Assembly (NCBI RefSeq): GCF_031769215.1
Contig: NW_026781915.1
Location: 682,001 to 746,000, forward strand
Source of the DNA: Ylistrum balloti
Lineage: Eukaryota
Direction of reading: 5' to 3'
Length of the DNA: 64,000 nt
The translations under genes were made by a program, and so were the position numbers. Positions 1 to 39,000 of the stretch are shown in pieces. The notes beneath the pieces are model-generated. The model ran no database searches. It saw only the letters and a program-made list of their open reading frames with translations, and was not told where the DNA came from. The number at the start of each line of letters is the position of its first letter. The stretch's first letter is position 1.

Positions 1-1251
1 TGTGTTAATCTAAATATTTTCCGTTATCTCCAGACCTTGTCCTTAAACAGATACAAAGTATTGCTGATAATTATACATGAGCACGTGACAAAGCCTGTAC
101 CAGTTCTTTGTATCATTTGTTTCATGACACAGCGTTTTTTCTATGTTGTCATTGACAATACGTGTACCAGATGTTTGGTACATAAGAATTATGGCACAAC
201 CTAGCTATCCAGGAAGCTACCATTATACATCTGTTATTTTGCCATCTGCACTGCATGTTTTCTTCCTTATGTCGCAATTTGTTTTGTTTTGTTTTAAATT
301 CCTCTGTGAAAACTCAAATTATCTTGAGGGGGGACTTTCAACTGCAATCGACATCTCCCAATAACATTTGCCGATGAAGGGTAGTTCTCATAAATCAGTG
401 GTATTTTTTTATCAACAACCCGTTAGTTTGCTTATCTCCCTTTAACGTTTGACAAATTTGTGTAACTTAAAGTCCAAGACAAGTTTGGCTAACGTTTCAT
501 GCTGCTTGGTTATCCACGTGGTAACATATGCATGGAATATATCAGGTATCTTTCCCTGGCCGATCGGATCACATCGGTCGAGTTGCGAATTAAAAAATAC
601 ATGTTTCCCAATAGAAAGTACTCGGAGCACACATATATGTTTGTGATAATCTCATTTTCAGCACTTTTCGCGCTGAAAATATTGCACTAAATTTTGATGT
701 CGTTAATTGCAATGTCTGAACGTTGTTTATATAACAAAATTCTGGATGCTACCAAAAACGAATATGTAGGAAGCATTACGCTTCATATCATTCCTCATCG
801 TTAATATTTGATGTTTTCGTTTTACAGTGGGAAAAAAACGCAACATATTTTTGGATTCTTTTTGACAATGAAATAAAGTTAAGAATATTCAAAAAAAAAA
901 AAAAAAAAACGAATATGTATATTATCTCTTGGTCTCTACTGTCCCGTCTAACTAAAGCCCTAACGCATCTTGTTTACACCATCAGTGTACTTGACGTCTT
1001 CTGATATTCTAATTGATCGAATTATGGAGCACATGCACCTCCCATCTAGATTTTGACATTTATGTCGCCTCCTACGTTTCAATGACGAATCCTATTAGGA
1101 CGAAGCAGCGGTATGATGCAGTTTTATTCATCATTTGCCTCTATTGCAATTAATTCTTAATTTGTATTAAAAGTTCCCATCTACTTTCGTAGCTTTTGTA
1201 CAATTTTCAATCACTAATAATTAATTGAACACTTTTCTTTCTTATTCATAG

Positions 1252-4200
1252 CCTTGACCGTGTGCCCTGATGGCTGGATACGTCGGCACCAGTCTTGCTA
1301 TTTTGTTTCAGAAGGACGTTTCCAATATGATGACTCCGTGGTTTGTACATACATTTATATTTTATAATAATATCATGTAATCAAAGTTCGTTAAGCTCCA
1401 GATTTGTTAATGAACTTAGGATATAGAGCTAGTATGGCTGTTCTCAGTAGTGTTCTACATGAAAGTATGAAAATCATTTTCACAACGTCCTTTCCAGATC
1501 ACTTTTCTCCGTTTGTGGGTCATAGTTCTGATTTGCTAATATCAGTATATAAGGGACAGTTTGGAGACCCTGTGTATGTGGGCGAAGACGGAATGACCTG
1601 ACATATACCACCAGTGAGCATTTAAAGTGTTTATGTATTATTCTAACATATAAGTTAAGCGATTTAGTTCCCTATTTAACATGCACTGGTCACCATCTGT
1701 ACCTTACAGGTTAATTGTGGGTCGGTAAATGCGAGTCTGGCTAACGTGGACGATGTTAACGAGTTAGAATTCCTCCGGTCGCTGATCAACCGATTTCCAA
1801 CAGGTATGTGATCTTTAAGTCTAGAATTTATATCAATGGGGGTGTCGGTGTGTTTCTAATAACTTGAATTCTAGATCTGCAGGTGTTGCAATTATGTTCA
1901 GAAATACATTTGAATACACTATTCACGGCAGTCGATTATATACAGCGAGAAGGTTTACTATTTTAGATATTACCATTAATACAAATAGCCCAATACGGAC
2001 TTGTGTATATGGGCCAAATCAAGATACACTAGAATTTTTCGACATTTTATGTGAAACATTAAAGGTTTGGGAAGGCTATCTTATGATTCTATGTGGGCAT
2101 TGGAAGACAGTTCAAGACAGAAATATGGACACCTATAACATTCTCAGAAATAATAACCCCAAGTGCCAAATAAGCATCGCTCAGATGATGAATACACTTG
2201 ACCTTGTTGATCCGTGGAGAAATTTTAATCCAGAACAAAAAACTTTCAAATGGAGACCAAAAAACACACTCATCCGACAAAGCAGATTAAACTATTTTTT
2301 AATCACAAATGATATATTTACAAAAACTAAGACTGCTACTATACTTCTAGGTTACAGAACTGATTACTCTTACATTGCCCCAGAATTTAACTTCGACAAA
2401 ACACAAACGGGAAGGGGTTATTGGAAACATAATGCCAAACTGCCAAAAGAATATGTCAGACAGGTAAAGGAATGTATTAGAGAAACTGTAGATTAGTACA
2501 TCTGGGGACAAACACAATCTTGCATCTACCACTTTTCGGATAAATGATGAATGATTCTTTGAAATATTCAAAATCAAAATTCGAACCTTGACTATTTCTT
2601 ACTCTCTAATCTAATTAAAGCAGAGAGCTTGAAAAGACAGGACAAAAATCTTGATATATTATCAAATTAGAAGAAAAACTTAATAAAGATGCTTCTAGAG
2701 AGCTTCTGACTGAATGGAAAACAAAAACCAAAACTTAGAAGACATTCGTAGAGATAAAATAAAGGGTGTCATGTTAAGATCCAAAGATGCATGGTATGGA
2801 GACGGTGAAAAAAATACTCATTACTTCTGTAATTTGGAAAAAAGAACAGATTCTGATAACATTTTAGAGGATATGGACAAAATATTACAGGAGGAGGCAA
2901 ATTTCTTAAGTAATCTGTATAAATCAAATAAAGAGACACAGGGTACTGATCATTCAGATTTCTTTAAACATACAATTAGGTTGAGTGAAGGTCAGAAAAG
3001 CAGTTGCGAGGGATTACTGATTTTACTAGCCTTAAAATACATGGAAAATTAGAAAAGTCCTGGTTAAGATGTGTTTTGGGCAGAATTTCAGAAATTTTTT
3101 GATGTGATTTAGGAATTCTTCTTCGAAGATCAGTTAACTATGGATATGAAAATGGGAAACTTTGAGATTTTCAATGTCAAGATATTATTACATGTTTGCC
3201 AAAAGAGGGAAGAGATAGAAGATATCAATATCATTACTGAATGTAGATAACAAAATAGCAGCAGCAGCCAAAGCTAATAGGATCAAGCCACTGTTAGTGC
3301 TATTATTAGTAATACACAAACTGTGTTTATTGAGGGTAGGTTTATTAGGGAAAATACAAGACAGCTGTATAATATAATACAACTTTGAGAAGAAAATAAA
3401 CAATCAATTAGAAAATGGTTTAAAGTGTTACACAATAATTAAAAAATTGCATAATTAATAATGGTCATTTGTTAAACTTCTTCAGTCTTCATCGCGGCTC
3501 TCGTCAAGGCGACCCATTGTCCCATTATATCTTTATCATATGTGTAGAAATCTTATCTCTGGCTCTGAAGACACATCCTGATCTTAAACCTCTACAGATA
3601 GACAATAAAAGTTTCCTGTTAGGTCAATACGCTGATGATGCATATATTTTGCTGAAAGACTCAAGTCAATCTTTATATGCTGCTGTTTAAATATTGAGTT
3701 TGTTCTCTGTCATGTCCGGTTTGAAAATTAATGTTACGAAATCTAGTATATATTGGTTGGGCGGTAAAAAGTTTTCGGAACAAGGAACTTCAGACTATTA
3801 GGAATATTGTTTTCATTGAACTTGGATGATATGGAAAGACTGAACTACTCTAGCAAACTAAAAGACACTGAACGAAAATTGAAATTCTGGGCAAAAAGGG
3901 ATCGTTCTTTACTTGGCAGAATAACAGTGGTAAAATCAATTATCATTCCTACTTATGAACATATATTTAGCTCTATTTCAACTCCATCCTCAAGCATTAT
4001 AATTTAGTTAAATAGCATACTGTACAAGTGTATTTAGAAATTCAAAGTAGAAAAAATTAAAAGGAACACCTTGATTGGTTTGCTAGAAAATGGAGGCCTT
4101 AAATGACACATATCAGTTCTTTTATCAAATATTTAAAATTGAAAGGATTAAAGAGATTACTTGAAAATGAACTTACAACTTGGAAAACTTTAGTTCAAGA

Positions 4201-7003
4201 AATCTTAACAATGGATCCAAACATTGCTGGTCGACTGAAATCAGAGTTGCTTGAAAATATAGGGAAACATATTAAAAACCAATTATGGAAAGATGTAACT
4301 TTTGCTTTAAGTAGAAATTCAAAATGAGTCATCAGCCTAAAAGAATAATTAGATGAAGACTTAATTAAACTGCTACCTTACAATAAAATTCACTTGGGAA
4401 TCATTTTGGGTTTAATAAAATTAACGACCTTTTACAAAATGGTACATTAAAACAATGGCAAGATGCTCAAGATATTCCAGATTTTGGCTTGCTGCAGTTT
4501 ATTCACTTTTAAATAAAATTAAACCAATATGGAAAGACGAATATCGAAGAAGGAGTTCTCGGGGTGGGAAATATAGAAATGTGTTTAACTGCTAGTGTAA
4601 TCTATAGAATAAAAACTTCTTAGAGCTTAGAATTTACTTACAAAATATATACTGAGAAAAGTTTGTACAGCCTTTAAAAAGTCTGGAAAAGTGGAGAATA
4701 AAATTAGACCTAAGTGAAAACTTTAAATTTGCCACCTGTGCATGTGTTTTTCAATATACTAGAGAAACCACACTACAGGCTTTTCAATATAAGATCCGGC
4801 ATAGAACAAGATAATTCATGTTCATTTTGTAAAAGGGGAGGAGAAACAATGGAACACATCCTGTACAATTGTTATCATACAAATGAATTGTTACAGGAAT
4901 TCACTATATGGTATACTGTAAATGACGATGTTCAAAATCATTTTATTCTGAGTACCACTGAGGCAATATTTGGTAATGCAACATTCAGTGGAAGACTAAA
5001 CCATTTCTTGTTAATGTTGCGATATCATATTTTTACCTGTAAATATAAAAACAAATTACCAACATTTCAATCGTGTAAATTTTTTTTCCATTCAGTTTCT
5101 GAAAGTGGAAAAACGTATTGCTAAAAGATTTGTAAAGTAAAAAAATAAGAATGGTATTTATGTTAGAGAATGAATGAAAGGTTTGCGAATGTGTATATCA
5201 ATAACATGTAAAACAGGTATGAGTGAGAGTGAAAAAATGAGGCAAGTAATGTGTAATGGTTTTGGGTGGTATTTGTGGGGGGACTCGTACTAGGCTTGTT
5301 GTGTTAAATGGCAATTTAACCGGCATTCGATATCGGGACGAAATTTTAAGACCAGTGGTTCTGCCATTCTTAAGACGCCATGGCGTTGGCGCCATTTTCA
5401 ACAGGATAACGCACCAGCGCACACCAGTCGCGTCAGCAGAACTTTCTTGCAGAAGAATAACGTACAGGCGTTAGATTGTTAGATTGGCCATCTAAATAAC
5501 CTGATCTGTCACCGATTGAGCATGTCTGGGACGTTCCTGGGCGACGCATGAGAGAACGTCAAAATCAGCCGTCAAACTTGCAGGAGCTGGCCCAAGCCTT
5601 GATCGCTGAATGGAACAGCATCTCTCCTCGAATTACCCGCCGCTTTGCGAGTTCCATACGACGACGCTGCAATGCTGTTTACTTCGCAAACGGTGGCCAT
5701 ACCCGTTACTTATGGTGTTACCTTTGAAATTGACCCCAACGTCCTTTACAGTCGAATAAAATCAACAGAACGCAAAGTTTTATAATGAACCATGACTGCA
5801 GTTTTATCAGAATTGATCAAATACTTTACATGACTGGTAAGGATTTATGAAGGGGTTAATTAATTAATCACAGAATAAAGTAGTGTTACCTTTCTTTTTT
5901 TTTAGTATATTAGATACTTGTGCAACTTGATATACCTTTCTATAAAGTGATGATTATTGTAAACAAAACAAGTCATGTAGGACACAGTGTGACAGAGTAG
6001 AAAGAATATGTGAAACACGATGATTTTTTGTGTGTGTACAGGGGTGTTTGTGTATGTGTCTGTGCTGTCTAGGTGTATGAGGGACACGTATTGTACAGAG
6101 TCTGACCCCAGGGCCCCAACCCTGGCCCAAACCCTGGCCCTAACCCTGGCAGAGCTCTCTGAAATTATGTTCTGGGGAAAAATAGAATTGATATCGATTT
6201 TTAATGAGTTTATGTGGTTTATTATCAACGTGTAAGCGATTTGATGTTCTAATGATTTCAGTTGACAAGGTTATAGGCAATACAAGTGATGTTTTTCTTT
6301 ATCAAATATCGCAAACTTATCCGCCAGATGTAGTGAACAGTTGTCTCAACTTAGTGACGGCTTTCTATATGGTCGACCTGACAAATGTTTTTCTATATGA
6401 TCGACCTGACCGCGGTTTCTGTATATGGTCAATAATGTCGATCCGACAGAATTAAAACAGGCAACATTCATAATTTTTGCAATTATTAATTTTGTTCTTT
6501 AAGAGCGAACAAGTGATCATTTCTATTGGATTGACGGAGTTCGTAACCATAACAACCATTGGTTCCGGAAAAATGGCAATGCTCCTCTGACTTTTTTCGC
6601 TTGGGGTACCGGGGAGCCCAACAACAGGTTCGGCAGAGAAAATTGCTTGGCGTTATATAACAAGGTTAATTTCTACTTCACCGACACTTCGTGTTATGAA
6701 AACGGCCAGTACATCTGTGAACTGAGGTAAGATAACATAACGATGCACTTACTGCCCCGACAGAGAAAGGACATAGCATAGTATAATTACTATTCACCAA
6801 GATGTTGGGAAATGATGTCGTATCAATTATTCAATGAAATAATCGGTTATTGCCTTTTTTGGTGTAAGATATCCGTGATCGTGCACTATTTTCTTTAGAT
6901 AAATTAAAAACGTACGAATATAGATAAAGATGCGTTGTTTTTTCAGGGATACAGTTCAGTCATGCATACAGACCGCGCCTCCATCCAGTACCTCCAGCAC
7001 TAA
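1252..7003 (+). CDS. C-type lectin domain protein (single CTLD, EPN motif); 5' exon(s) not identified
   Basis: Phase-consistent exons: 1252-1340 ([29 protein letters not shown]), 1710-1803 ([31 protein letters not shown]), 6504-6727 (FYWIDG...[19 protein letters not shown]...[17 protein letters not shown]), 6947-7003 ([18 protein letters not shown]). All have AG/GT boundaries. The CPxGW, SCY, WIDG, EPN and ENC...C...YICE motifs are CTLD hallmarks. Confidence 0.88.
1835..5124 (+). mobile_element. Degenerate, 5'-truncated non-LTR retrotransposon ORF2 (L1/Tx1 clade: APE endonuclease, reverse transcriptase, C-terminal zinc knuckle)
   Basis: Fragments in several frames: endonuclease ([35 protein letters not shown]), linker ([13 protein letters not shown]), RT ([34 protein letters not shown]) and zinc finger ([18 protein letters not shown]). 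Many stops and frameshifts. Lies in the lectin intron 1804-6503. Confidence 0.93.
5250..5909 (+). mobile_element. Tc1/mariner DNA transposon, 3' fragment (DD34E transposase remnant with probable right TIR)
   Basis: [36 protein letters not shown]; after a frameshift QDNAPAH...[16 protein letters not shown]...[15 protein letters not shown]...[17 protein letters not shown]. Ends in a TIR-like tract agtgttacctttcttttttttttagtata at about 5882-5909. Confidence 0.9.
6107..6150. repeat. Short 12-bp C-rich repeat (aaccctggccc-like, about 3 copies)
   Basis: ccccaaccctggcccaaaccctggccctaaccctggc is visible in the sequence. Confidence 0.6.
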
Positions 7004-7422
7004 GGCGTGGATACAATTAGGATGATCACAAGGTGACATCATAAACTTGTCACATTATGGTAGAAACTCTGTCTTTGAAAGACACTTGTATATTTAATAA
7101 AGCACCGGGACCATAGACCGCAGTTTACTAAAAGCTTCTTTACGAAAACCACACAGACGTATACAGAAGCATCAACAATAGCAGTTCAACGGAGGAAAAA
7201 TTTGATACCATGATATTTAAAAGTAGAAAGACACAAGCTGACTGAACATAATGAAAACATCTTACAAAGTTAATTGTTTTTGTTCAATTTCTAGATAAGG
7301 AAACAATGCATAGACAAGGAAACAACGCATAGATAAAAAAAAACACCAAGACTCCCAGACAGGAGTTTATTTAGGTAAATAATTGATGATATATGACCCT
7401 GTCATTCAGATTTAACGTGTTT

Positions 7423-7642
7423 CCTTGTAAACACTGGTATATGTAATGGCGCCTTGTAAACACTGGTATATGGTAATGGCGCCTTGTAAACACTGGTATA
7501 TGGTAATGGCGCCTTGTAAACACTGGTATATGTGATGGCGCCTTGTAAACACTGGTATATGGTAATGGCGCCTTGTAAACACTGGTATATGTGATGGCGC
7601 CTTGTAAACACTGGTATATGTGATGGCGCCTTGTAAACACAC
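7423..7642. repeat. 29/30-bp minisatellite (ccttgtaaacactggtatatg(g)taatggcg), about 7.4 copies
   Basis: Head-to-tail units with no spacers; explains the repetitive ORFs at 7371-7644. Confidence 0.95.
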
Positions 7643-9528
7643 ATTATGCTTATTTAAAGACGGTACTTACTTCATTGGAGTCAACTGCAAGGGGTACTTA
7701 ATCAATAATGTCGTCGTGTCGCAGGATATCAGGACACCATTGCGTCAAGTACATAATTGCGTGGTTTACTCTTATAATGTATGGCTGTGGCCTCCCGCCT
7801 CCCTATATATGCGAGGTTAGCGCATGTTGAGTGCAAGTGAGGAGTGGGCGGGGCACTGAAGTTCCGCCACAACGCACAACATACGAACTGGGGACATCAT
7901 TAGTATCAAAGTTACGAAAACATATGCTACGTATCAGCCTATTAATAATTTCATTTAGTTTTAATTCCATTGTGAAATTACCATAACATTATTATTCAAT
8001 ATTTTCCCGATATGTTTCGGCCCAAGGACCGTAAAACCCAAAGCTTTCCTTACATAGGCGAACACTTGACTAAAGGCCAAAAGTGATTGGCAGATCCAAG
8101 GCAGACATTAGGAAAAACAAACAAGTTTAGAGAGGAGAGAAGATCGCAAATGGCTTCCCTTCATGAGTATGCAGTGGAAGCACTAGAAACATTTCTTATC
8201 TCATACCTACAAGGGAAAAAATGTAGGAGGTGATTTGATGGTTTATATTATAGCCCGAGACGGAACTAATAATTATAATATGGACATTGCTCATTTTGAA
8301 GGCCAAAAGTGATCGTTGTTAAGGGATACATATGGAAGAAAAACAAAGAACAGAAGATATTACAACCCCAAGTTTAGTTAAACTGTTATATGCCAGATAA
8401 TTATTCCATCCGAATTATTAATGTTTAATCCTAGGTTCTTCATTTTTTAGACTATCTCCCTTGACAGAACAGCCAAGGACCTTAGTTGTACGTTTCACTC
8501 CCCTCTGTGATCGTGTAACAGTATACTTTATATCAGGAATTCAGACACGTCTAACATTTCTTTCAAGTCCAATGATATTATCAGTCTACAATCTACTTTT
8601 TTTCGTAGATGTGTCTTTAAAATGTGAGCTGAGAAAGGAACACCTGTGTGACGATTGTCGATTGTAAAGACCGCTATTGCATAATATCGAATAAGTCCAT
8701 TTGACAACGAAGTCCCGATAAGTTGCTGACAAATCACAAAATAAGTGAGAGAAACCGAGCTGACCAGCCTTCAAGCACTACGTAAAGTGTTTTATTAGAG
8801 GTCTGTCACAGAAACCTTTTCGATGTAGGTTTTTTGTCTGTATATTAAATATGCTTGTATATATTTACAATTGCCACTGTTTCTGTATCAATAATCTAAG
8901 TGAGAGTTATTCTGTGTATTTCTCTAAAACTTGAATGTGAATTTTGATCCAGTTTGAGTTTTCATCTTAGGATGCATCACTTTCAAACGTAGCTATCACT
9001 AGTACTTTCCACCTAAGTATTCTGTCCCAATACCTACTGATACAAGTATGAAAATATTGTAACAAGTAAAATATTGATAATCATGTGAACAAGCTTATTT
9101 AGATATTTAAACGCAGGAACTTTTTTCTTGTCACGGAGAAAATGGTGGTTTATTGCTGTGGGAGATTTAGTTACTAATCAACAGGTTTAAGATGACGTCG
9201 AAATGATTTTGAACGAAGAGTACACTAGATGAATATTGTATCTGACTCTATAAATGGTGTTATTCTAAAAGATGATATTATAAATAGAAGTATTGACCAT
9301 TTATTTTTTTAGTTTATAAGATGATAAATCCAATGGAGCAGTTGGGTAAACTGTTCGAAAAATACAAACCTGGTAACTTTGCTAACTGTGGCGAAATTCG
9401 ATGCAAAATAGGTATTTGAGACTTTTAAAAACAGGTCTTAATTTCGAGGAAATCAGTCCTAGTAGAAAAGCACAGATAAGTAAAGAAAATGTTTAGGATT
9501 GCAATAAAGTTGTCTTAACAGCAAAGAG

Positions 9529-9668
9529 GTCTTATTTTAGAGGTTGTATTTAAGCGAATTGGTCTGATTTTAGAAGCTGTATTTCAGCGTGTTGGTCTTA
9601 TTTTAGAGGTTGTATTTAAGCGAGTTGGTCTTATTTTAGAGGCTGTATTTAAGCGAGTTGGTCTTGAT
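9529..9668. repeat. 33-bp tandem repeat (ggtcttattttagaggttgtatttaagcgagtt), about 4 copies
   Basis: Four imperfect adjacent units are visible. Confidence 0.85.
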
Positions 9669-10994: not shown

Positions 10995-11792
10995 TTAAAA
11001 ACAATTCGATGTCTTCGGCGCACAGAATTGGTTCACAGGTAGACCGAGGGATGTCATGTGACCTTTGACCTCAGTCAGAACTTCACTGCTAAGTGCCGGC
11101 ATGCGAGAGAAAACGACAGACCCTTCATAGTACCAGTCGGATGCTACATGACCACAATAGTAGCCTATCATATAACTTAGCTTTGGGTCCTGGTACAGAA
11201 TTCTCCATTCTGTGGTCGTCTCATGTCCCATCTGCATGCTTTTGTATTCCAAAAGTCCCTGAACTGATGTGTTTTGCACGGCCGTTTCGTTAACCAGCCT
11301 GTGTTTAAGCTTACCGTCGACGGTATGTACTTCAAAAAGTTCGTTTACAAACAAGGTGTTGGAAGTGTTCGACGGTTGAAATGTGGTTATTTGGCAGTCA
11401 AAACAGTCGAAATTAGGGTTAAGTCCGAGAACAATATACCACGCACCTTTAAGTTGCTGTGCGGACAGAGTTTGTAAAGGTGGATGTGGAGGCTTGCAGC
11501 GGAAGTTAGGGTCTGGCGAAACCATGGTGATGCATTTATGTTCCGTAAATGCACACTTCATGAAGGTATCGAACACGTCGTCCTCGTACGAATAAAGACA
11601 GTCGAACATGCATGTTTCGTTTTGCGTTCCACATCCCGTGATACATGCCAGTGCCGACCTACAGTCGGAGTCCAACATGCAGTTTTTAGACTCTTCAGCG
11701 CAGTGCATCATCATGCACAGAATATTTTGACCACTTGCACCATCCGGGCTAAACAGAAGAAACAGTGAAAGGGAAAGAATGGCAGATATCAT
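10995..11792 (-). CDS. Violaxanthin de-epoxidase-like (VDE/VDL family) secreted protein: signal peptide, Cys-rich domain, VDE-type lipocalin; 265 aa, intronless CDS
   Basis: Hydrophobic N-terminus MISAILSLSLFLLFSPDGASG. Cys spacing C-x4-C-x6-C-x5-C-x5-C-x3-C-x6-C-x3-C-x14-C-x6-C, versus plant VDE C-x4-C-x6-C-x5-C-x5-C-x3-C-x8-C-x3-C-x14-C-x6-C (from memory). LKGAWYIVLGLNPNFDCFDCQ matches VDE GKWFITxGLNPTFDAFDCQ. Also EWRIL, YYCG, YEGSVVFSR and terminal F...NC. Confidence 0.9.
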   Translation of the reverse strand: MISAILSLSLFLLFSPDGASGQNILCMMMHCAEESKNCMLDSDCRSALACITGCGTQNETCMFDCLYSYEDDVFDTFMKCAFTEHKCITMVSPDPNFRCKPPHPPLQTLSAQQLKGAWYIVLGLNPNFDCFDCQITTFQPSNTSNTLFVNELFEVHTVDGKLKHRLVNETAVQNTSVQGLLEYKSMQMGHETTTEWRILYQDPKLSYMIGYYCGHVASDWYYEGSVVFSRMPALSSEVLTEVKGHMTSLGLPVNQFCAPKTSNCF

Positions 11793-14175: not shown

Positions 14176-17100
14176 ATGGGCAAACGGAAATTTAAGAAAA
14201 GTGTTGAAGGGTCGCTTGGTAATTTAAAAACAACATTTGTTTTCAGTTTTCATTGAGAACATTTCCCGAACTTATAGTATACCTCAATAAGTTTGGTTTC
14301 GACACTAGTTATGAATGATTTTAACAGAGAATGGGTAAACGCCGGTAAATACTACCATTCATCCATATGGCATCATTATGATATCAATCAACATTAATAT
14401 GATCGATATTGGTCATTACAACACGGAAATTTGACGAAAATTCAAGAATACGTATGCTGTATCTCAGTGCATGTAGTTTATGTCTGGTATATAGTTAAAC
14501 AGCGAATGTGAGTGTTGAACCCCATTAAACTGTGTGCCCTAGCAGAAAAATATAGACATGCTTGCTTGATTGTTTTATATAACATCGTCAACAACTGATA
14601 TACAAATGTAACTGATAAACAGTGATCTCACAATCAGGTTGGGGAAACCACAAATTTGCATATAATACACAAACTAGCCACTTATTATATACGTATGGAT
14701 TTGTTATGAAAATAGCCGCAATCACTTTAAACTAAGTTTCTCTAATTTTTTGCAACAGTCACATTTATATAGTCTGGAAACATACAACTTCAAAATTATG
14801 ATTTAGTTGCATGTGTGAAACTACTGGATATAGATCATAAGATGCAGTACTTCCAGCCTATTATATGATAGTACAGTTACTACAGGGACAACCGTTACAT
14901 CAAATTTCTTAGTTGCGAGCAGTTTCAATAAACATCACTTAGTAAAAAAAATATTTACCTTGTCATAAATAAATGTGACTTTTAATAATACATTGCGAAA
15001 ATTACTGTTTAAGTGATTTTGGTTATATTTTGTAACAAATCCATATTCCTATTTGGAAATAATAAATAAGCTATTATACACAAAGTTGTGGTTCTCTCTG
15101 AGATGATAAGTAAGTGTATCTGTCAACTTTCCTTACAGATCATGACATATTCCAATACTCAGTTAAGAAAGCGATCATTTATTCTTCCTTTGAAATGTAG
15201 CTATTTGTAATTAACTCCAACAAAGTATTTTCTTGTGTCCAGCCAAGCTCTCTTCATGAACATTGATTAATTTGTTGTATGTTTGAGGAAAAATTATAAA
15301 CAGGTTGTTGTAGTTGATCAGTACTCTTTGGAAGTAGAAATAATTGATTGAAATATATTTTACAAATGTTTAGTTAATGTAGACAAGTACACTGGTGAGT
15401 TATAATATTCATATTCTTTTTAGCGGAGAGGAGGCGACGTATACAGCAAGCAAAAAGAGAAGTGGCTATCGAATCTAAGGGAAAAGCATCTAAAAAATAC
15501 AGTGTAGAACAACTTTTGGAGAAGGTAGATATTTTGATTATTCAGTGCAAACATAATTCTTTTTATGAATGGAAATTAATTGAGGAAAAAGCGTAATTCT
15601 CTTTATCCTTGCAAGAAGTTTATTACTGTTTAGATTTGAAGGATCAACTTCTATGATATTGTTATGATTGTGTTAGTGGTGGTGACTATAATACTCTGTA
15701 AAAATTTGTAAGAATTACCGAGTAAGTTTTACTTAAAAAGCGCCCCCACCCCTCCCAAAAAAAAATTGGTTTTTGTTAGCCCACCATCATCAAATGTTGG
15801 GTTCATTAAATTTCCATGGTTTATCTGTCCTGAAACAATTCCTTCATCATTTTTTCTGGAAAAGTACTGGATGGATCATTCTCAAATTTCATATGTAGAT
15901 TTGCCTTGGTTCCTGGTAAGAAAAGCAAGATGTCTGCAGGCAGCCATTTTGGGTTTTGATAGCCATACATTTTTATTGCTATTTCTGGAGAAGCACTGAA
16001 TGGATCATATTCAAACTTCACATATAGTCCTTAGCAATTTTTATTTCATTTTGGGACAGGTGATCAATTTGGATTTTGACAATGAAAGTTTGTTAGAAAG
16101 AAAAACTAGTAAGACAATGCTTTAAACTATTATGATGAAATTTAACCTGAACAAATGATAGAACTTTTGACATGTATAAAATTGAAGAAAATAAAGAAAG
16201 AAAAATGGCATATTCTTATGGAATTGCAAAAATCAAAATCAAATATGCACCAAAGCCTAAAGATTGACAGACGACATTTATGGATTTTACAGGGGAGGCA
16301 CTGGTAGTCAAATTAAAAAAAGTAAGAAAAAGAAAAAAATAACACCTGAATTTTTGTTATTTCAGTAAAAGTTTGAGTCACAAATATGTTGAAATTATAC
16401 ATCAACAGATCTCTTCAGTAATTCAGTTAATAATTCCTCACTGATAGACTGTCAACTGCCAGCAGTAAATTTGAAGAACTCTTCTTTGCTAGAGGCACAA
16501 TACTGAGTGGTGGAACATTTTGCCTTGAATTATAAGTCAACTTATTCTTTCCATTTTGGTATTCAAAATAGTGTCACACTAGTAACAGAATGAACTAAGC
16601 TCTGATAAATGTCAAAAGATATTTCAATACTTAGAGCTATGAAAATTTGTGAGACTGAAAATCAAATTTATACATAAAGGAAAAGTTGTGTCTCCCTGGA
16701 GGTAAGAAGTGAAATCCAAAACAAGGAATTTTGTACAAGTCACCTTTTTCACCAACAAAAATATCTTTAGGGCACTGCAGTGCCTTATACATACTAAATA
16801 GATAAATCATTTGTCTTTAACCTTAACTTGTAAAACTAGACTCTGAAAAAAATTATTCTTTAACTCCAATTGTTTGTATATCATATGCACAGAACAAATG
16901 TACACTTTCTATTACACAGGCAGAAGATTGTATTGATCGATTTGAATATGAAGTTGCCCAAAAGTTCTGTCAGAGGGCTTTGGAGATGGAGCCTGATAAT
17001 ATTCTGGCTCTGGAAACAACAGGATCCCTTCTGTTAGAGCTTGGAAATCAGGAGGCTGCAAAACAGGTAGTGTATTTCAAATGAAGAAGTGAATTATAAC

Positions 17101-20100
17101 AAGCTTCCTGTAGTCTCTGAAGGAAGTTTTCAAAATAGGAACAAGAGGATGCTGCTAAATGCTGATAACTTCACTTTCCTGTATCAACAGACTCTTCTTC
17201 ACTGCAATATAGAAAAAAGTAATGAAGTTAAAATATGCAAAACTTAACTACCCTTTCATGAAAGCCTACATATGTTTAAATACAGTTACTGTTTCAATAC
17301 CAGGTTACTTCCCTTTGATGAAGCTTTCTTGTCAATCCTATTTTTGCAGTGTTTTGGCCGAGCTGTGGAAGTCTGTCCTAACCAAGGCCATTCAAAGTAC
17401 ATGTACCTAGGGCAGTTGTTTGAAGGTGCACAGGCAGTTCAATGCTTCCAGAAGGGAATAGAATTAATGATGAAGGAGCATGAGGCGAAACAAGCATCAG
17501 AGGTGTAAAATTTATGTGCTATAAACTTACCATATTTCTTTAAAAACTTGTTAAATGGTTAATATTTTCATGTGTATAATGAATAGAAAATGCTCAGGAA
17601 TTAGTATAGTGATCTCTTAATTGAATAATTTACAAACTGGAGATACATACAATTCATATGTATAACTTGAATGCAAACAAAATCTCATGTATATTCAATG
17701 AACAATGTGCATTGAAATTTTCCTCCTGAAGTGTCAATTGAAATTTCCAGTTGGCAGCTGCCTGTGGGGGTGGACCACGAGATGGGGTTTCAAGTGAAGA
17801 AATTTGCAACGCCTACCTGTCCCTGGCAGAACTTTACATGACAGACTGTTGGTAAGGGTGTTTACATGAGTGGGAAAACTTTGTGAGAGGAAAATTAATA
17901 TACCTGGCATAGAAATGTACTAGTTTTGTGATAGTTAACCCAAGTTAAAGGGCTTTCTGAGATTGGCCCATTTAGAATTATGTTAAACTTTATTGATATG
18001 AAAAATTTCAAAACTTGCTAGTTACCAGTACTGCTGAAAGTCTTCAAAAATTTGGTTCTCAATTGGTTAATTTTCTTCCCAATATCATTCATAAAATATT
18101 CAATTGCAAATGGTCAGGGAATACTCTTACTTAGAGGAGTTAATTATTTGTTATATTTTGCATTAGAGTTTGAAGTAAAAACTCAATTACCTCTACTCTC
18201 TCATTCTACCTGTATAATTAACATGATAGAGAATTGTTGAGTTTCACTTCTATGCTTCAAGGCCGACAGGTGTTCATTTTGTTACCTAAAAATATCCAAT
18301 GGCTTTTTAGTTTTTTACCTCGAGATTTATTGAAAATTTTAGCATGGAGGAGGATGCAGATATAAAATGTGAACAGTACATAAACCAAGCTGTAGCAATT
18401 GACAGTGAGAATGCTGAGGCCTATCAGATGATGGCCAGCTATCAACTCTCTAAAGAGAATGATGAGGTATGTTCTCGTTCCTCTACAGCAAGTGTTGTTC
18501 AGTAGAAAGTTGTGTAGCCTTCCATTTCTCCTTATACTATGTAGTTCTTAGAGAATCAAATGGAATCGACTTTTATTCCATTTTATGTGTGGTTTTTAAC
18601 AGAGAGTTGATTATATGTAGATATATTCCTTACATACTCATAGACTTAACAGGGAAATATCATTCTTTTCATACTATTCAAATAATGTAGAAGAATATAC
18701 ACTTTGTATTTGCAATATCCTAATGTAAGTTTCCTCACAGTAAAAGAAAAATGCAAAGAAGGTATTTAGGAGAAAACTTCTAGTTTTTATGTTGCTTTTT
18801 AAAAGCACCTGTCCCTAATATGTGAACATTTCAATGTTCTAGAAGGCTACAGAGATGATTAAGAAGAGTGTATCATTATGGTTACCCAAATATAAAGCAG
18901 CTGACAAAGGAGAAGTTCCTGATGAGGAGTTTAATCCACTGGAGGTAATCCTTTACACTGTACACCTCCATATTTTGCTCAAGAAAAATTGATAATACTG
19001 AATGCTTTTGATATAAACAACAACCATTCACCAAACAGTTTGCTATAGCTGAAACTTGTTAATCATGGATTTTATAATTATAAATTCCTTTCTAGAGGAC
19101 AAAGTTAAAACTTAAATACAAATGAATTAACACACTTTAAGATTGATTTTAAGAATACATACAAAAAGCAGTTGTCACCATGTGAAAATTTGGTTCCAAA
19201 ACAAAATGTATGATGAATGTATGATGAATTTGTGAATATATATCCCTATCGTCGGGTCAGATAGGTTGTTATCACCACTTCCATGTCGGGCCTTTCTTGG
19301 TGAGTGCCACTCACCTTATGACTAATCTGGAGGGTTGACCCTTCTCATTTTCAGAGGCTGCCCATGGGTTTGCCTTATCAGGTGGTCTAGTTCCCTTTCA
19401 GTTTAAATTTGGTCCCTGGACAGATTGTTTGAAACTAAAACTCTCCCTACCAGAAGTGGCTTTTAAATCAATGAATGTATTTATTGAATGCTTGTTCGTG
19501 TTGCGTTATGTGCTCATAAATAAAAAATATGCATTTTGAGGTCATATACCTGAAGGGTGAAGATGACCTATTGCTAGTGTGCACTGTCCATAGTGGTACA
19601 CCGTTCGTTGACTGTCGTCATCCTTGTGCCATCCGTGAACTTTTCATTTAAAACACTACTCCTGCTTATCGCCTGGGTGGATTTCAACCAAATTTGGTCT
19701 GAAACATCATTTGAGATGAGGCCTCAAATGGGGAAGTAAGACAATACTTGGCTTCATGATGCTATTTCTTCTTAATGCCTAGGTAGATTTTAACATAATT
19801 TGATCTGAAACATGATTACTGGTGGGTTATCATTTCTTAAATTCAGAAAAGTGATTCGACCTCTAGGGATCTGGAGTTAGTTAGTCGATGATTTTGCTTC
19901 AAAATGCTATCCTTCCTTACTGCTTGAATGGATTTATGCTGAATTTGGCCTGAAATACATCATGGGAATTCATCAGATTTGTCAGGCAATTATCTGCAAA
20001 TTCTGTGGTTAGTCCATCTGTTCATTGATTGTCAGATGACGGGTAAGGGCCATGGCCCTCTTGTTCTAATACTTACCTCTGTTCAATTAAATTGCTATAA

Positions 20101-22438
20101 TTTGTATTCATGTGTGATAAATGCTGTTCAGCATATGTTTGTAAATATGTCCATTTGCTGTGCTAATGCTATAGTGAAATTTGTTCTGTTTCTGTGGATA
20201 TGCACAATGTAGCCATTTCACCACATGTAAGAAGTGATTCTTCAAAGATTTTCAGAAGCATGGACTTCATAAGGTTGGATTGGAGGCGAAAGGTTTTTTT
20301 TAATGTAACTTGCATGTTATGTTGATTTATAATAAATTAGCCAAAACTGGATTTCAGTTTCTATGAGATATGAAGGGGAGATAATTAAGGAATTTTTTGC
20401 ATCAATGTTGTAATGCTATGGAAGGGAGGTAACTTAAAAGTATACCCCGGTAATATGCCTTGGAGACAGACCTGAAAGTTGTTTAAATAGCATATAAACA
20501 ATCAGATAAATTATATGTTATATTTTCTTATTCTTTTCAGTTGACTCCACTCAGTTTTGATACTAGGATAGCAGCAGCCAAAATATTAACAGAAGTGAAA
20601 GAATATGAGGTAAGTTTTGTTTTTGTCTTCTCATTTGATTAATTTCTTCATTTGGAACAAAAATTTTACTTTCAAACTCAGTGAGCTAAAAAACAATACA
20701 TTTTTTTTTCTGAAAATACATCATTTCTTTTGTAAGTGGGCTCCACCTTTTGGTAGATGAATGATAATTATTCAGAATTGTTACTGTTTTACATGATGAT
20801 TAAGATATCCTGTGGTTCAAAAGATATTAGCTGACCATGCTGATGGTGTTAAGACTGATCATGGTATGCTTTGCAAAATTGATAAGACTGATTCTGACAA
20901 AGTTGATTCATTCATAACAATCAACTAGTAGTGTTTCCTAGCAAGTTCATTTATTATACAATGAGCCTAGATAAATGCCGTATGATAACAAACAGATGTT
21001 ATATATTGTTCAATTCATGTAATGCTGTTTTAAAAATTAAGACATGAAAGGTAATTAGGAGATGACTGAATTCATAGTTTCTATTAGATTAGAAAAATAT
21101 ACCTGTTAATAATGATATTATTGCACAGACTGCGGTGGATGTATTAGAAGGTTTACTAGATGAGAATGATGAGGTTCCACAAGTCTGGTATATGATTGGC
21201 TGGTCCAACTACCTACAGGGCCAGGACTATAAGGAGAATGCCCGCTACTACCTGCAGCAGGCAAAACAGGTAGGTTATGATAAATTTGTATCTGGCAGTA
21301 AAAACTTACTTGTAGTGTAATTTTTACGGATAGTTTAATGGTGGTTCAGCTACATTCAACAATAAACTGATTCCTGTTTGATATATAATTGAGTTATATT
21401 GGGTAGAAGCAGAACAAAGCTAGAAAAGTTTTAAGTCATATACCCCACATTAATTACTTGTGGAATTATATCTATTACAGGTGTATGAAAAGATTAAATG
21501 TGATGATCCAGAACTTTTGAAACACATAGAGGAACTAATTGAGGAGATTGGCCCAGGTATGTAATATGCTCTTAGTTTGACTTGAAGTTGATACTAACTT
21601 TGTTTTTATGCCCCTCCCCCACTACCCCTCCCCCTTTCCTTGAGGCATAAAGTGTTATTCCATATCTGTCCATCATGTTGCACCCTATCCTGTTTCGCCA
21701 CATTTGGAAACAAGGTCATATCTTGAGAACCTCTTAAAAACAGTCTTAGTTCATATTTCCCCCGGTGGTATCATTACATTAAGTTCTAAACCTTTCTGAT
21801 TAAAGTGGACATTAGTCATGGTTAAAGGGGTAAAGGTCTTATATACCAACATCTGTGAATTCATCAAACAATGATACTTTTGCATGGGAGCATTAGACAT
21901 TTTGGAGTTGAATTCTGAAGGTAAGATCAAAACATGGCTGTAAAATTTCATCAAATTCAAAATTTCTTGACAAATATTGAAACTAATTTCAGTAATTTGG
22001 TGAAATAGAAAAAGTTTATTTTTCAGTCTTTGTAGGTATTTCAAGCCTCTGCCCATTTAATCTTGTTGACACAATCTATTACTTTAGAATCAGACTGTAG
22101 AATAAACCTTGAATATAAACTAATGAAGTCATATTTTCAGCATGACATCATTATTGGCAATTAACTGAGGTCTGGTTTGCTTTCAAAAATCCTACTTACT
22201 TTAGATGTGCTTTCTTGTTTTGTAATATATCTCTGTCTAGATTACATGTCCAAAAAACATTCTTATATCTTTATCAAAGTAGTTAATTGAACACCATGTA
22301 TAACTGTTCACATGATCTATTTCTGTAGGCGAGGAAGAGGAAGATGGCAATGAGGATGAAGATGTAGGAGATGATTTTGACAGTGACAGTGATGATGAAA
22401 TTGATAGTAAAACAAACGATGAAGCAATGGAGCACTGA
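14176..22438 (+). CDS. ACL4: TPR protein, assembly chaperone of ribosomal protein L4 (Acl4-like), 11 exons, 388 aa
   Basis: Exons 14176-14218, 15424-15524, 16920-17066, 17350-17502, 17751-17851, 18343-18466, 18843-18944, 20541-20609, 21129-21269, 21481-21556, 22329-22438 are all phase-consistent (1167 nt). Motifs: AQKFCQRALE, KYMYLGQL, LAELYMTDCCMEEDA, LEGLLDENDEVPQVWYMIGW and an acidic C-terminal tail. AATAAA at about 22453. Confidence 0.88.
15795..16080. mobile_element. Degenerate non-autonomous intronic repeat (Helentron-associated/HINE-like)
   Basis: Starts ttagcccaccatcatc, carries two similar tggatcat..tcaaa.ttcatat modules and a gcagccattttgg motif resembling invertebrate non-autonomous elements. 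Family assignment is inference. Confidence 0.4.
19535..20090. mobile_element. Degenerate non-autonomous element with internal core repeats (CvA/pearl-like, Helentron-associated)
   Basis: 5' module gaggtca...gatgacctattgcta, then a cgtcatcc/ccatccgt tract, then three degenerate repeats of tggattt...aatttgg.ctgaaa (about 19678, 19784, 19929). This architecture matches bivalve HINE/pearl elements (inference). Confidence 0.5.
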
Positions 22439-28357: not shown

Positions 28358-29248
28358 ATGGCGTCAAAACAGAAGTATTCTGTGACCCGGATGCAAAAAC
28401 TACCGCCTATTCGTGAGGAATCGTTCGCCGTCCCGACCCCCCGGACTCCACGTGTTCCCTACTCTCAGGCGTCAGTTCCAGTTAAGGCGGGTCGTCCTGC
28501 TCCCGTGTCAAACGAGCCAAAAGCCAATCTGGCAGATCTGAACACAACTTCTCTCAGTAAACCAAGAATTCACGTGAGGCCACTCCCAGGAACTGGACCC
28601 GATGACGATTTAGACCGACCTAAACTGGTCCAGAAACCACGCCTCACCGTGGAGATGCCGATGACACCGAACGACAGTCACACCCTGGTAGATGGACTAG
28701 TAGCAGACTATCTTCACTACGCAGCTTACGGACACATTATCCCTGTGTATGAAGGCATCGGCCAATTACAGTGTTCCTGTTGTAAAGACAGAAACAGAGA
28801 GAATGTTCGAAATCTTCTAGGCCTGCCATCATCAGACAAAAAAGTGATCAAACACAAAAAGGCACAGCTTGGACGTCTTCAACCCAAGTTTGTACCACCG
28901 ACCAAACCCAAGGAAAATCACGAAGTTGACGAGAAGGCTTGGAACGCCCCCAAAAAGAACCACACTCCGAAAGTAGACTGGAAGAACGAGACTTGGATGA
29001 AACACCAACCTTTGCCAGCAGCAACAAACTTTTTGAATCCCGAGTTCAATCGCCCTATATATGCTTATCAGAAACCGCCCGAAATTGAGATACCTTCGCT
29101 AGTATTTGACTCTGTACTTCACGCAAATACCAAATATGACCAGTCTATGAAAAGACTAGAGAAAATGTTTCAGATAGATTCCGAACTTCCACCCAACCCT
29201 GATGATGATTATTTGTATAATGGTCCGCCGGAATGGAACGTCATGTAG
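28358..29248 (+). CDS. Uncharacterised Pro/Lys-rich protein, 296 aa, single coding exon
   Basis: Long GC-elevated ORF with a good start context (tcaaaATGG). Splice acceptor tgtttcag at about 28310-28317 just upstream, and a probable 5'UTR exon ending at a donor at about 28092. No recognised domain. Confidence 0.75.
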   Translation: MASKQKYSVTRMQKLPPIREESFAVPTPRTPRVPYSQASVPVKAGRPAPVSNEPKANLADLNTTSLSKPRIHVRPLPGTGPDDDLDRPKLVQKPRLTVEMPMTPNDSHTLVDGLVADYLHYAAYGHIIPVYEGIGQLQCSCCKDRNRENVRNLLGLPSSDKKVIKHKKAQLGRLQPKFVPPTKPKENHEVDEKAWNAPKKNHTPKVDWKNETWMKHQPLPAATNFLNPEFNRPIYAYQKPPEIEIPSLVFDSVLHANTKYDQSMKRLEKMFQIDSELPPNPDDDYLYNGPPEWNVM

Positions 29249-36000: not shown

Positions 36001-39000
36001 CACAGCACGTACATATATACCGTACTAGACTAGTTGTTATTTTTACGTGTAATTAATTGTTTTACGTGTAGTAGACACTTTTCCAAGTATATTCAGCGGA
36101 TGCTCAAAATATGAATTGAGTACTAACTGTTGGTTTCTAGAATATCTTTGTTGGGGCCTTGGAAAACATCCTCTAACCAGTTATAGAAACGGTCAGGTTG
36201 GCCTTTTTTCTCCTGAAGCCTGCAATAAATGATAAACAAAAGTTACAACAATCACCAATACTGTTATATCAGTCTTACTACAGATTCGCTGTCTAATGTT
36301 CTATACCTAAGTATAAAACAGGACATTGCAACATAGCACTGAAAATTTAAAGATTCACATTCTTTGATTGAATGTTTGGCTGTACTGTACTGTTTTAAAT
36401 GTTGCTAGTCTCTTGTGTGTCTTTTGACCAATCTTTGAATAAAATGTCGTAATTGGGCCAAGACTAGAACAAATTAACACTAATTAAAAACCCAGATGTA
36501 CTAATCTTGTCAATCAATGTGTTACTTACCAAACTTTGAGCTGTGTATTAACATACTCTACCAAGTCATCTCGTTTGGTTTTACCTAGAGCAGACAAGAG
36601 ATCGGGAACACCTAGGTCCTGCCGATTTTTACTCAAGTCTCTCCACAGCTTTAGAATCTTAAAGGAAAGGAATGTATTGTAATGCACAAGTTTTTTTTAT
36701 AAGAAATACATTCTTGGTTTTGTTAACAATGCAAACAGTTATCAATAAAATTTAACATTAACTTTGCAATATACAACTTCATACTGTCGATTTCTTTAAA
36801 CATGGGTTTTGGAGTGATGATTTTGTCGGGCAAAGGAAAAATGACGAAAATATTAAATGTTCGCAAAATACTACAGAATGCTACAATCGCAAATGGGGTA
36901 TGCATACGTCTAGAATATAGTGTAAATGTTTAACAAATGCACATATAACGCCTTGTCTCGTTTTTTGTCTGCACTTGCGGCCGCCATTTTGCTTGACAAT
37001 ACTTTGCAACTTCAGATCCATCGTTTTTTTTAAATTAGTCTTTATGGATTTGATACCTCGAATTTCTTCTCTGTGATTGTCTTGTTGGGAAGCTTAGAGT
37101 GTTCCTCTACTGTTCGGTACGTCAGACCCATGAGGACGCTTACTTTGATCCATTCGTCGCCAAGTTCTCTAGCCAAGTGTTTCAGTAAACTATTTCTTGT
37201 GAAACCTGTCAGGTATAATTTATAGGCACATAGTAATCGTTCTCGATATAAGAGTTTAATAAACATGAATGACTCAATGATACCAAACCCAAATAAATGT
37301 ACATGGTATATTATATCATAATTAAGTGACATTGTTTTGTATAGCTCTTTACTTTCAAACTAACAAACGACTTAACGACTTGTTCGCTTTAACTTTCATT
37401 GGTAGCAACAATCTAATCTACTTCTAATGCTTATTGAGTTACATGTAGAGGCCAATATATTAGTTCAGACACTAATTATATAGATATTTTTGTCTCAGGA
37501 GCTGAATTGATTAATTTGTATGGTTATCGTTATGGTACGATTTCTACCTATACCACTGGTAAATATATTTATCAATGTCCTATTTATTTACCATGATTTG
37601 AAATAACGGGTTTGTCCGTTGTGTGTTAATCCTTTCGAAGTACTTAGTTTGCATTCATTGATGAGTTGCATTTTCTATCGTTCGTTTCAACTTCGGGTTT
37701 AATTAAAAGAACATTGATGCACTGATACGTATTCGTCAGGCTCTTTTCCTCTGCACTAATTACTTACGTTTCTATTTTAGGTTAGAAGGAAATCGTCTCA
37801 TGAAATGTTAACAGAAAATTAACTCGAGAAGTTACTGAGTTGGATTTGACATTCGGAGAGAAATTGGTAGTCATTCACTACTTAACATGTAGTCATAGAA
37901 AAATACTGTCGTGCTTACCTGGAAATCCGTCTTCAAATTCCCCTAAATCCTCAAGAAATGGGGTACCAGTTAAATGAACCGTTATTCTAGCAATTTCCTC
38001 CCCAGTTTCATCATCAGTCAGAATCACTGAGCCAAAGTTCAGTTCACCGTTCTTTTTCCGACGTATTTGAAACTGTTGAAAATTGAACCGTTTTGGATGA
38101 AAGTCTAATGGAGTAGAAGTTAATCCTCCATGCTTTTCGATCTCGTCACTTAGTGTTATGAGGTACCTCTTTCTGGGAACGGATTCAAAGTCTCGTGATA
38201 TACTGGGCTTTTGATCTAGATATCTGCACGCTCTCCAGTGATTAAGCCTGTCCTCCGCTTTTCTTGCTATTGTTATCTCCACAATGACGTCGTAAATTTC
38301 ATCGCCCAGTGGTTTTAACATGACAATGAGTTTGACATGTTGTTTTTTAAGTGAGGCCCTTCTACACAATTTGGATGTCTGCCTAATTACCGCCTCTTCT
38401 GTCATGTTCTGTTGGGCCTCAGACGCTACATAGCTGTAATAGTTCAAAGAAAACATATTAAAATCTAACTTTATTATACTTTAATCATCGCTATTATGAT
38501 ACGTTCGAAAAAAATGTCCTAAGAATTTCTGTCTCTTGGTCATAAAGTAAATTGATGGAACTGTACTTTTTGAACCAATACTTAACTTTAACAAACATGT
38601 CTGTGGAAGTATCTCACCGCTACCATCCAAATTCTATGCAACCATAAAGTGGTGAAGATTCGTTGTCAAAACACAACAAGATATTTATCCGTGGTAGCGT
38701 GGATATCATATCAATAGAATGGAGTGGGTAGTAGACCCTTGCCTAAACTACCTGGATACCGACGACCTACTGCACAAATCCAACACATATTCATACCAGT
38801 ACGTCAATTAAGGAACAACTATAAAACCAACTTACGGGTACAAGTGATTTATAAATATACAATTAAGTTGACAAATACGATATATCTTCTATACTTGCAC
38901 ACTCTGGAATTCATACAACTTTCAAAATCGCTCATAAATAGGTTTTAAATAACACAGAAATTGAGATCTTAATCTGTATGAACTTTCAATAACCTATATT

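Follow-up and report, generated by a model that had tools for sequence, protein, structure and literature searches.

A short-form violaxanthin de-epoxidase-like gene in the genome of the scallop Ylistrum balloti

The VDE-like gene and its locus

A 64-kb stretch of the genome of the scallop Ylistrum balloti (RefSeq assembly GCF_031769215.1, contig NW_026781915.1, positions 682,001 to 746,000), referred to here as the window, carries a gene related to violaxanthin de-epoxidase (VDE). Its coding sequence (CDS), placed by the list of open reading frames (ORFs), by a match to the Pfam VDE family PF07137 and by a gene call on JAUZWB010000590.1, occupies positions 10995..11792 on the minus strand as one complete exon of 265 codons plus a stop. 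An earlier note on this DNA, made from the letters alone, had described an intact ORF of 265 amino acids (aa) here, and the frame does run uninterrupted from ATG to stop, with no internal stops. Within the window the gene is single copy by tblastn.

The Pfam VDE profile aligns to residues 25-258 of the protein over profile positions 3-239 of 242, with an E value of 9e-49 and a score of 166.5 bits against a cut-off of 25.7, far above chance level. In contrast, the generic Lipocalin and Lipocalin_2 models stay below threshold on the same protein (14.4 and 14.1 bits versus cut-offs of 23 and 24), so the comparison of profiles proposed in the earlier note comes out on the side of VDE over nearly the full profile. 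The protein matched nothing in NCBIfam, the coverage of which is prokaryotic.

The exact protein is encoded on JAUZWB010000590.1, a 3.58-Mb contig of low GC content in assembly GCA_031769215.1. Its neighbor, lying head-to-head with it at a distance of about 2.4 kb, is a multi-exon gene on the plus strand (14176..21792 and beyond, converted from a gene call at 1-7617 on the minus strand of the extracted locus), the 388-aa product of which gives faint TPR matches. The same pair is found on a Pecten maximus chromosome, where the VDE-like orthologue adjoins the same neighbor gene of ~388 aa, and the exons of the neighbor gene align between the two scallops in collinear blocks of 81-92% identity. 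At 90% clustering, the window protein falls together with XP_033739127.1 of P. maximus and XP_021343544.1 of Mizuhopecten yessoensis. Both show 86% identity to it over the full length, are encoded by a single exon and carry the motif T-[ED]-W, and the three represent the same gene. Comparison with the P. maximus orthologue gives a dN/dS of 0.055 (dN 0.072, dS 1.30; Nei-Gojobori), and the ORF has thus been kept intact under strong purifying selection across a long divergence.

A foreign sequence at this position could be an algal contaminant, a very recent algal transfer or a dead retrocopy. The intronless CDS would suit such an origin, as would the algal DNA in which filter feeders are rich and the base composition of the ORF (GC 0.455; GC at third codon positions 0.50), which is somewhat above that of two ankyrin-repeat ORFs in the window (0.38-0.42) and of the flanks (0.34-0.37). 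The raised GC is as expected of a coding exon. Opposed to a foreign origin are the embedding of the gene in a large low-GC contig beside an intron-containing gene, the identical arrangement in Pecten, an intact ORF with so low a dN/dS at a dS of 1.3, and the presence of orthologues in a chiton, abalone, oysters and clams; nor is the protein nested within any algal clade of the tree described below. We consider a foreign or artefactual sequence very improbable, and the size of the contig, the synteny, the purifying selection and the position in the tree led us to reject contamination and recent algal transfer. The same observations, with homologues in molluscs and amphioxus, bear out the animal genome suspected in the earlier note.

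Domain architecture and predicted fold

The protein opens with a putative hydrophobic signal peptide (residues 1-21; 11730..11792, minus strand), read from the sequence and modeled at a per-residue confidence (pLDDT) below 50, which stops just ahead of the first conserved cysteine; the putative cleavage site was placed by the same reading. There is no plastid or lumen targeting extension, the Cys-rich domain being preceded by 21 residues. Among relatives, the short forms have 0-27 residues ahead of this domain, whereas proteins of the VDE, VDL-type and VDR-type clades mostly have about 80-270.

A helical Cys-rich domain follows (residues 24-90; 11523..11723, minus strand), delimited by the cysteine spacing, the helices of the structural model at residues 24-84 and Foldseek alignments. 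Its ten cysteines (C26, 31, 38, 44, 50, 54, 61, 65, 80 and 87) are separated by gaps of 4, 6, 5, 5, 3, 6, 3, 14 and 6 residues. Three representatives of the canonical VDE clade, including a sequence of the angiosperm Sarcandra glabra, show a spacing of 4, 6, 5, 5, 3, 8, 3, 14 and 6. The sole difference is at the sixth interval, exactly the "x6 versus x8" reported in the earlier note.

The remainder forms an eight-stranded lipocalin barrel with a C-terminal helix (residues 100-265; 10998..11495, minus strand), as delimited by the model, matches in the Protein Data Bank (PDB) and residue mapping. The residues of this domain considered below are D129, D132, C133, Q134, F138, E169, T194, E195, W196, Y212, F228 and C264. 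The four motifs that had been quoted from the protein earlier are all found, at residues 116, 195, 211 and 222. Beyond the VDE set of cysteines there are four more (C99, C130, C213 and C257), which are invariant across the group of short forms defined below, and the protein probably contains eight disulfides. Four N-glycosylation sequons are present, three in the barrel (N142, N168 and N174) and one in the Cys-rich domain (N58).

An AlphaFold2 model was built from twelve bivalve-type sequences, half of them from named bivalve species, and has a mean pLDDT of 77 and a pTM of 0.70. It leaves residues 1-21 disordered and predicts a helical region at 24-84, eight strands between 116 and 229 and a C-terminal helix at 236-248. 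The top match among solved structures is the lipocalin domain of Arabidopsis VDE (3cqn/3cqr), both by sequence (E 2.6e-14) and by fold (E about 1e-12). In a Foldseek search of Swiss-Prot, four plant VDEs lead with both domains aligned (E 1e-17 to 1e-19; TM score 0.76-0.77 by query), while apolipoprotein D (ApoD), AMBP, Blc and crustacyanin come next at about 1e-8, some ten orders weaker and over the barrel alone. The structural check against the Arabidopsis lipocalin, which had been proposed along with the VDE assignment, thus returns VDE as the best PDB match and extends to the Cys-rich domain of the plant enzymes. A shape search with the ESM Atlas is concordant with the VDE fold. With the family profile, the ten-cysteine domain and the fold all in agreement, membership of the VDE superfamily stands.

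Plant VDE (Arabidopsis Q39249) is the closest among solved and reviewed proteins and shares the order of a ten-cysteine helical domain followed by a lipocalin barrel. The scallop protein differs from it in lacking both the transit peptide and the Glu-rich C-terminal domain (~100 residues in VDE), and in having the four extra conserved cysteines and the sequons. It ends one residue beyond its last cysteine, with no Glu-rich tail, whereas the tails of VDE-clade proteins are mostly about 80-190 residues long with 8-27% Glu. Crustacyanin, ApoD and bilin-binding protein resemble it in being secreted and in having an eight-stranded barrel, a C-terminal helix and a disulfide from barrel to tail, but lipocalins of the crustacyanin/ApoD type have no Cys-rich domain, and their sequence similarity to the scallop protein is marginal (E 0.004-0.5). 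Taken as a whole, the protein is a disulfide-rich, two-domain member of the VDE superfamily that enters the secretory pathway and is under strong constraint.

Phylogenetic position and distribution of the short forms

To place the protein, a tree of 86 domain sequences was inferred with IQ-TREE under LG+C20+F+G4. Residues are compared below in Arabidopsis numbering, taken from a review (PMC13181403) and mapped by a phmmer alignment to 3cqn together with the family alignment. Three clades are recovered with strong support. The canonical VDE clade (support 100/95), anchored by the Sarcandra sequence, has H121, Q153 and F155, a D-D-W motif, Y214 and a Glu-rich tail. The VDL-type clade (100/100) has Asn at 121, Glu at the 153 position, an E-N-W motif and a Glu-poor tail, and its label was given by these signature residues and by the diatom-dominated clusters of the Atlas, not by named VDL1 or VDL2 sequences, a basis that is counted again when function is weighed. 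The VDR-type clade (100/100), of plants, Chlamydomonas and other green algae, has Q121, Y124, an E-[FY]-W motif and, in most members, an N-terminal extension of 200-270 aa. Several plant proteins of ~510-560 aa that are named "violaxanthin de-epoxidase, chloroplastic" group in this VDR-type clade and not with canonical VDE; the VDE name seems to have been propagated across plant paralogues.

The scallop protein lies outside all three clades. It belongs instead to a group of 19 sequences (85/91) with other molluscs, amphioxus, a chytrid and further sequences, in which the pteriomorph-type sequences (scallops, oysters and close relatives) unite at 90/57 and the imparident Dreissena and Mya sequences form a clade at 100/100. 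Strict membership of VDE, VDL or VDR was rejected on clade support and signature residues. The label of VDE/VDL family given in the earlier note therefore holds at the level of the superfamily and fails in the strict sense, since each of the three supported clades excludes the protein. As judged from the alignment and tree, the short secreted VDE-like proteins of heterotrophic eukaryotes form a separate, loose group outside VDE, VDL and VDR. The backbone between groups is weak (65/76), so that the tree does not fix the sister group of the short forms, and a tree constrained to mollusc monophyly is not rejected (p-AU 0.13). With weakly supported deep branches and several long rows, the tree does not separate ancient inheritance from old horizontal transfer. 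This position agrees with that found by Coesel et al. in 2008, in whose trees an expressed sequence tag (EST) of Crassostrea virginica, the eastern oyster, fell among the VDLs without bootstrap support and, by another method, at the root of the family (PMC2483416). We conclude with high confidence that the window contains a real animal gene encoding a VDE-superfamily member of a distinct secreted clade.

Each of the other branches shares part of this architecture. As in the scallop protein, the Glu-rich tail is absent or weak in VDL1 and VDL2, and equivalents of C130 and C257 and a Glu at the Q153 position are common to both; VDL-type proteins, however, have long N-terminal targeting extensions and an E-N-W motif, where the scallop protein has T-E-W and no Glu at 177. 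VDR has the same two-domain core, and the sixth cysteine interval is x6 both in the scallop protein and in a VDR-type sequence from Nicotiana. VDR-type proteins nevertheless have an additional 110-320 aa or so at the N-terminus (in most, about 200-270) and lack the extra cysteines, and the VDR-type signature (Q121, Y124, E-[FY]-W and the long extension) is wholly absent from the scallop protein.

An exhaustive profile search returned 971 representative clusters at E ≤1e-3, of which 68 reach ≤1e-30. Taxon labels come from cluster look-ups and Atlas summaries and cover a minority of the tree sequences; two further word-indexed searches with profiles contributed hardly any named animal sequences or none, and a fold search of AFDB clusters gave matches without organism names. 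Relatives also lie on two short contigs. Named bivalve relatives are Ostrea edulis, Dreissena polymorpha and Mya arenaria; other molluscs are represented by Haliotis rufescens, H. cracherodii and the chiton Liolophura sinensis; and beyond molluscs there are an amphioxus (Branchiostoma lanceolatum), a chytrid (Quaeritorhiza haematococci), an alga-eating vampyrellid amoeba (Leptophrys vorax) and Emiliania huxleyi. In the Atlas summary the cluster of the query itself is mostly Mollusca and the next is most often Porifera, and the family probably reaches sponges. The short VDE-like proteins are thus not confined to bivalves, being found in gastropods, chitons, amphioxus, a chytrid and an amoeba. 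A pattern scan of bacterial and archaeal genomes gave no relative, as a narrow test that does not prove absence.

Scallops, oyster, abalone and chiton have the CDS in one exon, and spliceosomal introns divide it in Dreissena (two or more exons mapped) and Branchiostoma (four exons). On a rough mapping of exon boundaries the intron positions of the latter two apparently do not coincide, which is uninformative on common ancestry. In D. polymorpha (CM035915.1) the VDE-like genes number at least two (LOC127865316 and LOC127847942), and O. edulis has three consecutively numbered loci, LOC130046680-82, so the family has been duplicated in some bivalves. The VDE-family protein of the chytrid, KAJ3084678.1, bears the GenBank name "Vitamin D3 receptor," in which VDR (VDE-related) has almost certainly been spelled out wrongly. 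This chytrid has Haematococcus, an alga rich in carotenoids, as its host.

Active site and proposed function

Much of the VDE site can be traced in the scallop barrel. The residues kept with respect to Arabidopsis VDE are D114 (D129 in the scallop protein), D117 (D132), C118 (C133), Q119 (Q134), F123 (F138), W179 (W196), Y198 (Y212), G200 and the C-terminal partner cysteine C249 (C264), along with all ten N-terminal cysteines. Across the alignment of twelve sequences, six of them from named bivalves, D129, D132 and Q134 never vary, and W196 and Y212 hardly do. By this mapping, the cavity keeps several polar residues that are important for VDE catalysis and ascorbate binding.

Other positions have changed, and these changes weigh against an enzyme that works as VDE does. 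The proton donor D177 is replaced by T194 and the adjacent D178 by E195. At the D177 position all three scallop sequences have Thr and oysters have Ser; at the D178 position Mizuhopecten has Asp where the window protein has Glu, and one oyster-like representative has no acid at either. The pair forming the pH switch is gone (H121 to T136, Y214 to F228), as is the D114-R138 salt bridge (R138 to E154), and the pocket is altered at F155, now A171. With F155A, R138E, H121T and Y214F, the VDE mechanism is not simply transferable. To the same side of the balance belong the signature-based VDL label noted above and a correlation with diet that is drawn from about ten named taxa. The active site, as read from the alignments, is only partly retained.

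A carboxylate is nonetheless found nearby. Q153 is replaced by E169, and Glu occupies this position in VDL-type proteins too, whereas the Dreissena and Mya sequences have Gln. E169 sits between N168 and T170 of a sequon on the strand 162-173; should N168 be glycosylated and directed outward, E169 would face the cavity, as Q153 does, and on the periodicity of the strand alone it should do so. At 177, Glu is found in the Dreissena, Mya, abalone, chiton and amphioxus relatives, as in VDL and VDR. A position 177 without an acid thus characterizes the scallop-oyster (pteriomorph-type) sequences, the chytrid and two further relatives.

The best explanation overall, which we hold tentatively and with not quite even confidence, is that this is a secreted short-form VDE-like protein with a plausible role in handling dietary xanthophyll epoxides. 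Taken separately, its parts differ in strength: that the ligand is a carotenoid is possible, though somewhat short of probable, and that the protein acts catalytically on xanthophyll epoxides is rather doubtful. The guess at a carotenoid is made because of the chemistry of the superfamily, the carotenoid conversions of bivalves and the algal feeding of the carriers. All characterized members (VDE, VDL1 and VDL2) work on xanthophyll end groups (PMC13181403); the algal VDL1 and VDL2 convert violaxanthin to neoxanthin and diadinoxanthin to allenoxanthin, respectively (PMC13181403). In bivalves and tunicates, dietary fucoxanthin and peridinin undergo an allene-to-acetylene change and hydrolytic and oxidative cleavage of the epoxide (PMC6949322). 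The ascorbate-independent rearrangement of end groups by VDL fits the conversions known in bivalves, and the organisms with short forms that could be named feed on algae or parasitize them.

In such a protein, the barrel would take in one end group of a long hydrophobic ligand, stacked on W196, the ligand being most plausibly a 5,6-epoxy-xanthophyll from dietary microalgae. Acid catalysis by polar residues of the cavity could next open the epoxide or rearrange it, in the manner of VDL. The putative catalytic set would comprise Y212, D129 and Q134 with a carboxylate, supplied either by E169 in place of Q153 or by E195 next to the missing D177. Such chemistry would proceed in a compartment that is extracellular, digestive or lysosomal and would not be gated by the pH of a thylakoid lumen; dimerization of the thylakoid kind, gated by pH, is not expected, since neither the switch residues nor the Glu-rich tail remain.

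The same residues can be read as those of a protein that has given up catalysis. It would be a noncatalytic secreted carrier or store of carotenoids or other lipophiles, comparable to crustacyanin or ApoD, in which the ancestral enzyme activity was lost in pteriomorph bivalves. The Thr or Ser at D177 in scallops and oysters and the oyster-like representative with neither acid are what such a loss would leave, and the pH switch and membrane-binding tail are absent as well. Lipocalins are mostly carriers (PMC13181403), and the structures that match next best are those of ApoD, bilin-binding protein and crustacyanin. However, the (near-)invariant cavity residues D129, Q134 and Y212, with E169 in pteriomorphs, look more like an active site than like a greasy pocket, and the Cys-rich domain, essential for VDE activity, is fully retained. 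We regard a pure carrier as somewhat unlikely, though to be taken seriously; the very low dN/dS fits enzyme and carrier alike.

The nature of the ligand is a separate matter. The protein might be an enzyme or binder for a hydrophobe other than a carotenoid, such as epoxy-lipids, sterols, polyene or polyether algal metabolites, or quinones. It falls outside every clade of known substrate, the replacements of F155 by Ala and of Q153 by Glu alter the pocket, and the family occurs in heterotrophs of very different diets, all of which would suit a different ligand. Set against this are the uniform xanthophyll chemistry of the characterized superfamily members (PMC13181403), the retained equivalents of W179 and Y198 and the named carriers, which are mostly algal feeders. 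We judge a noncarotenoid ligand quite unlikely, though it too is to be taken seriously.

Returning to xanthophyll epoxides as the preferred substrate or cargo, a wider and bolder proposal can be framed for the family, although we think it improbable in its full form. The short secreted proteins of molluscs, amphioxus, sponges, algal-feeding protists and fungi might be the long-sought enzymes of filter feeders for dietary fucoxanthin, peridinin, diadinoxanthin and violaxanthin, whose 5,6-epoxy and allenic end groups they would open or rearrange. They would then constitute a plastid-free counterpart of VDL1 and VDL2, in which the catalytic carboxylate of pteriomorphs had moved from 177 to E169 or to the 178 position.

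From the fucoxanthin, peridinin and diadinoxanthin of algae, marine animals derive dozens of carotenoids, such as pectenolone, mytiloxanthin, halocynthiaxanthin and the crassostreaxanthins. To our knowledge, VDE/VDL is the only family shown to perform such end-group chemistry in algae. For animals, the review that describes the conversions in bivalves and tunicates names no enzymes for epoxide cleavage or for the change from allene to acetylene (PMC6949322). A conserved, secreted VDE-family member in algal feeders makes this question of carotenoid enzymes experimentally concrete in one small gene. In addition, a plastid-free branch across opisthokonts and protists argues that the architecture of a Cys-rich domain plus lipocalin is not purely a photosynthetic invention.

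That bivalves have VDE-family genes was already known. A member of the family has been on record as an EST from oyster since 2008 (PMC2483416), the family was listed in the Manila clam genome in 2017 (PMC5499747), and RefSeq and UniProt already give VDE-type names to scallop, abalone, Dreissena and Mya proteins, as the earlier note had expected of automated annotation. Both scallop orthologues are called "violaxanthin de-epoxidase, chloroplastic-like" in RefSeq, a name transferred automatically and wrong for a secreted animal protein. In the literature we found no paper that groups animal VDE-like proteins, describes their secreted architecture or tests their function, searches on the assembly accession gave no papers, and searches on VDE with bivalve, scallop, oyster or digestive gland yielded no functional study, in keeping with the statement made earlier that no functional characterization was known. 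The value of the locus is limited accordingly, the gene having been visible in databases since 2008 and its role being plausible for a candidate only. What is new here is the synteny and constraint of the scallop gene, the recognition that the animal proteins group outside VDE, VDL and VDR and share a defined signature, and the partial remodeling of the active site in scallops and oysters.

Elsewhere in the window, three ORFs, at 28358-29248 (plus strand, 296 aa), 1864-2496 (plus strand, 210 aa) and 37893-38456 (minus strand, 187 aa), have no Pfam match and may be chance ORFs, unannotated exons or repeats, and no Rfam family matches anywhere in the 64 kb. Two adjacent ORFs on the plus strand, 55367-57031 (554 aa) and 57076-59118 (680 aa), are packed with ankyrin repeats (the first matches Ank_2 at E 9e-44) and probably represent exons or portions of a single large gene of this repeat type. 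The window also contains three minisatellites: the longest, at 47174-48027, has 22.5 copies of a 38-bp unit with 95% matches, and the others have 7.4 copies of a 29-bp unit (7423-7640) and 4.2 copies of a 33-bp unit (9528-9665).

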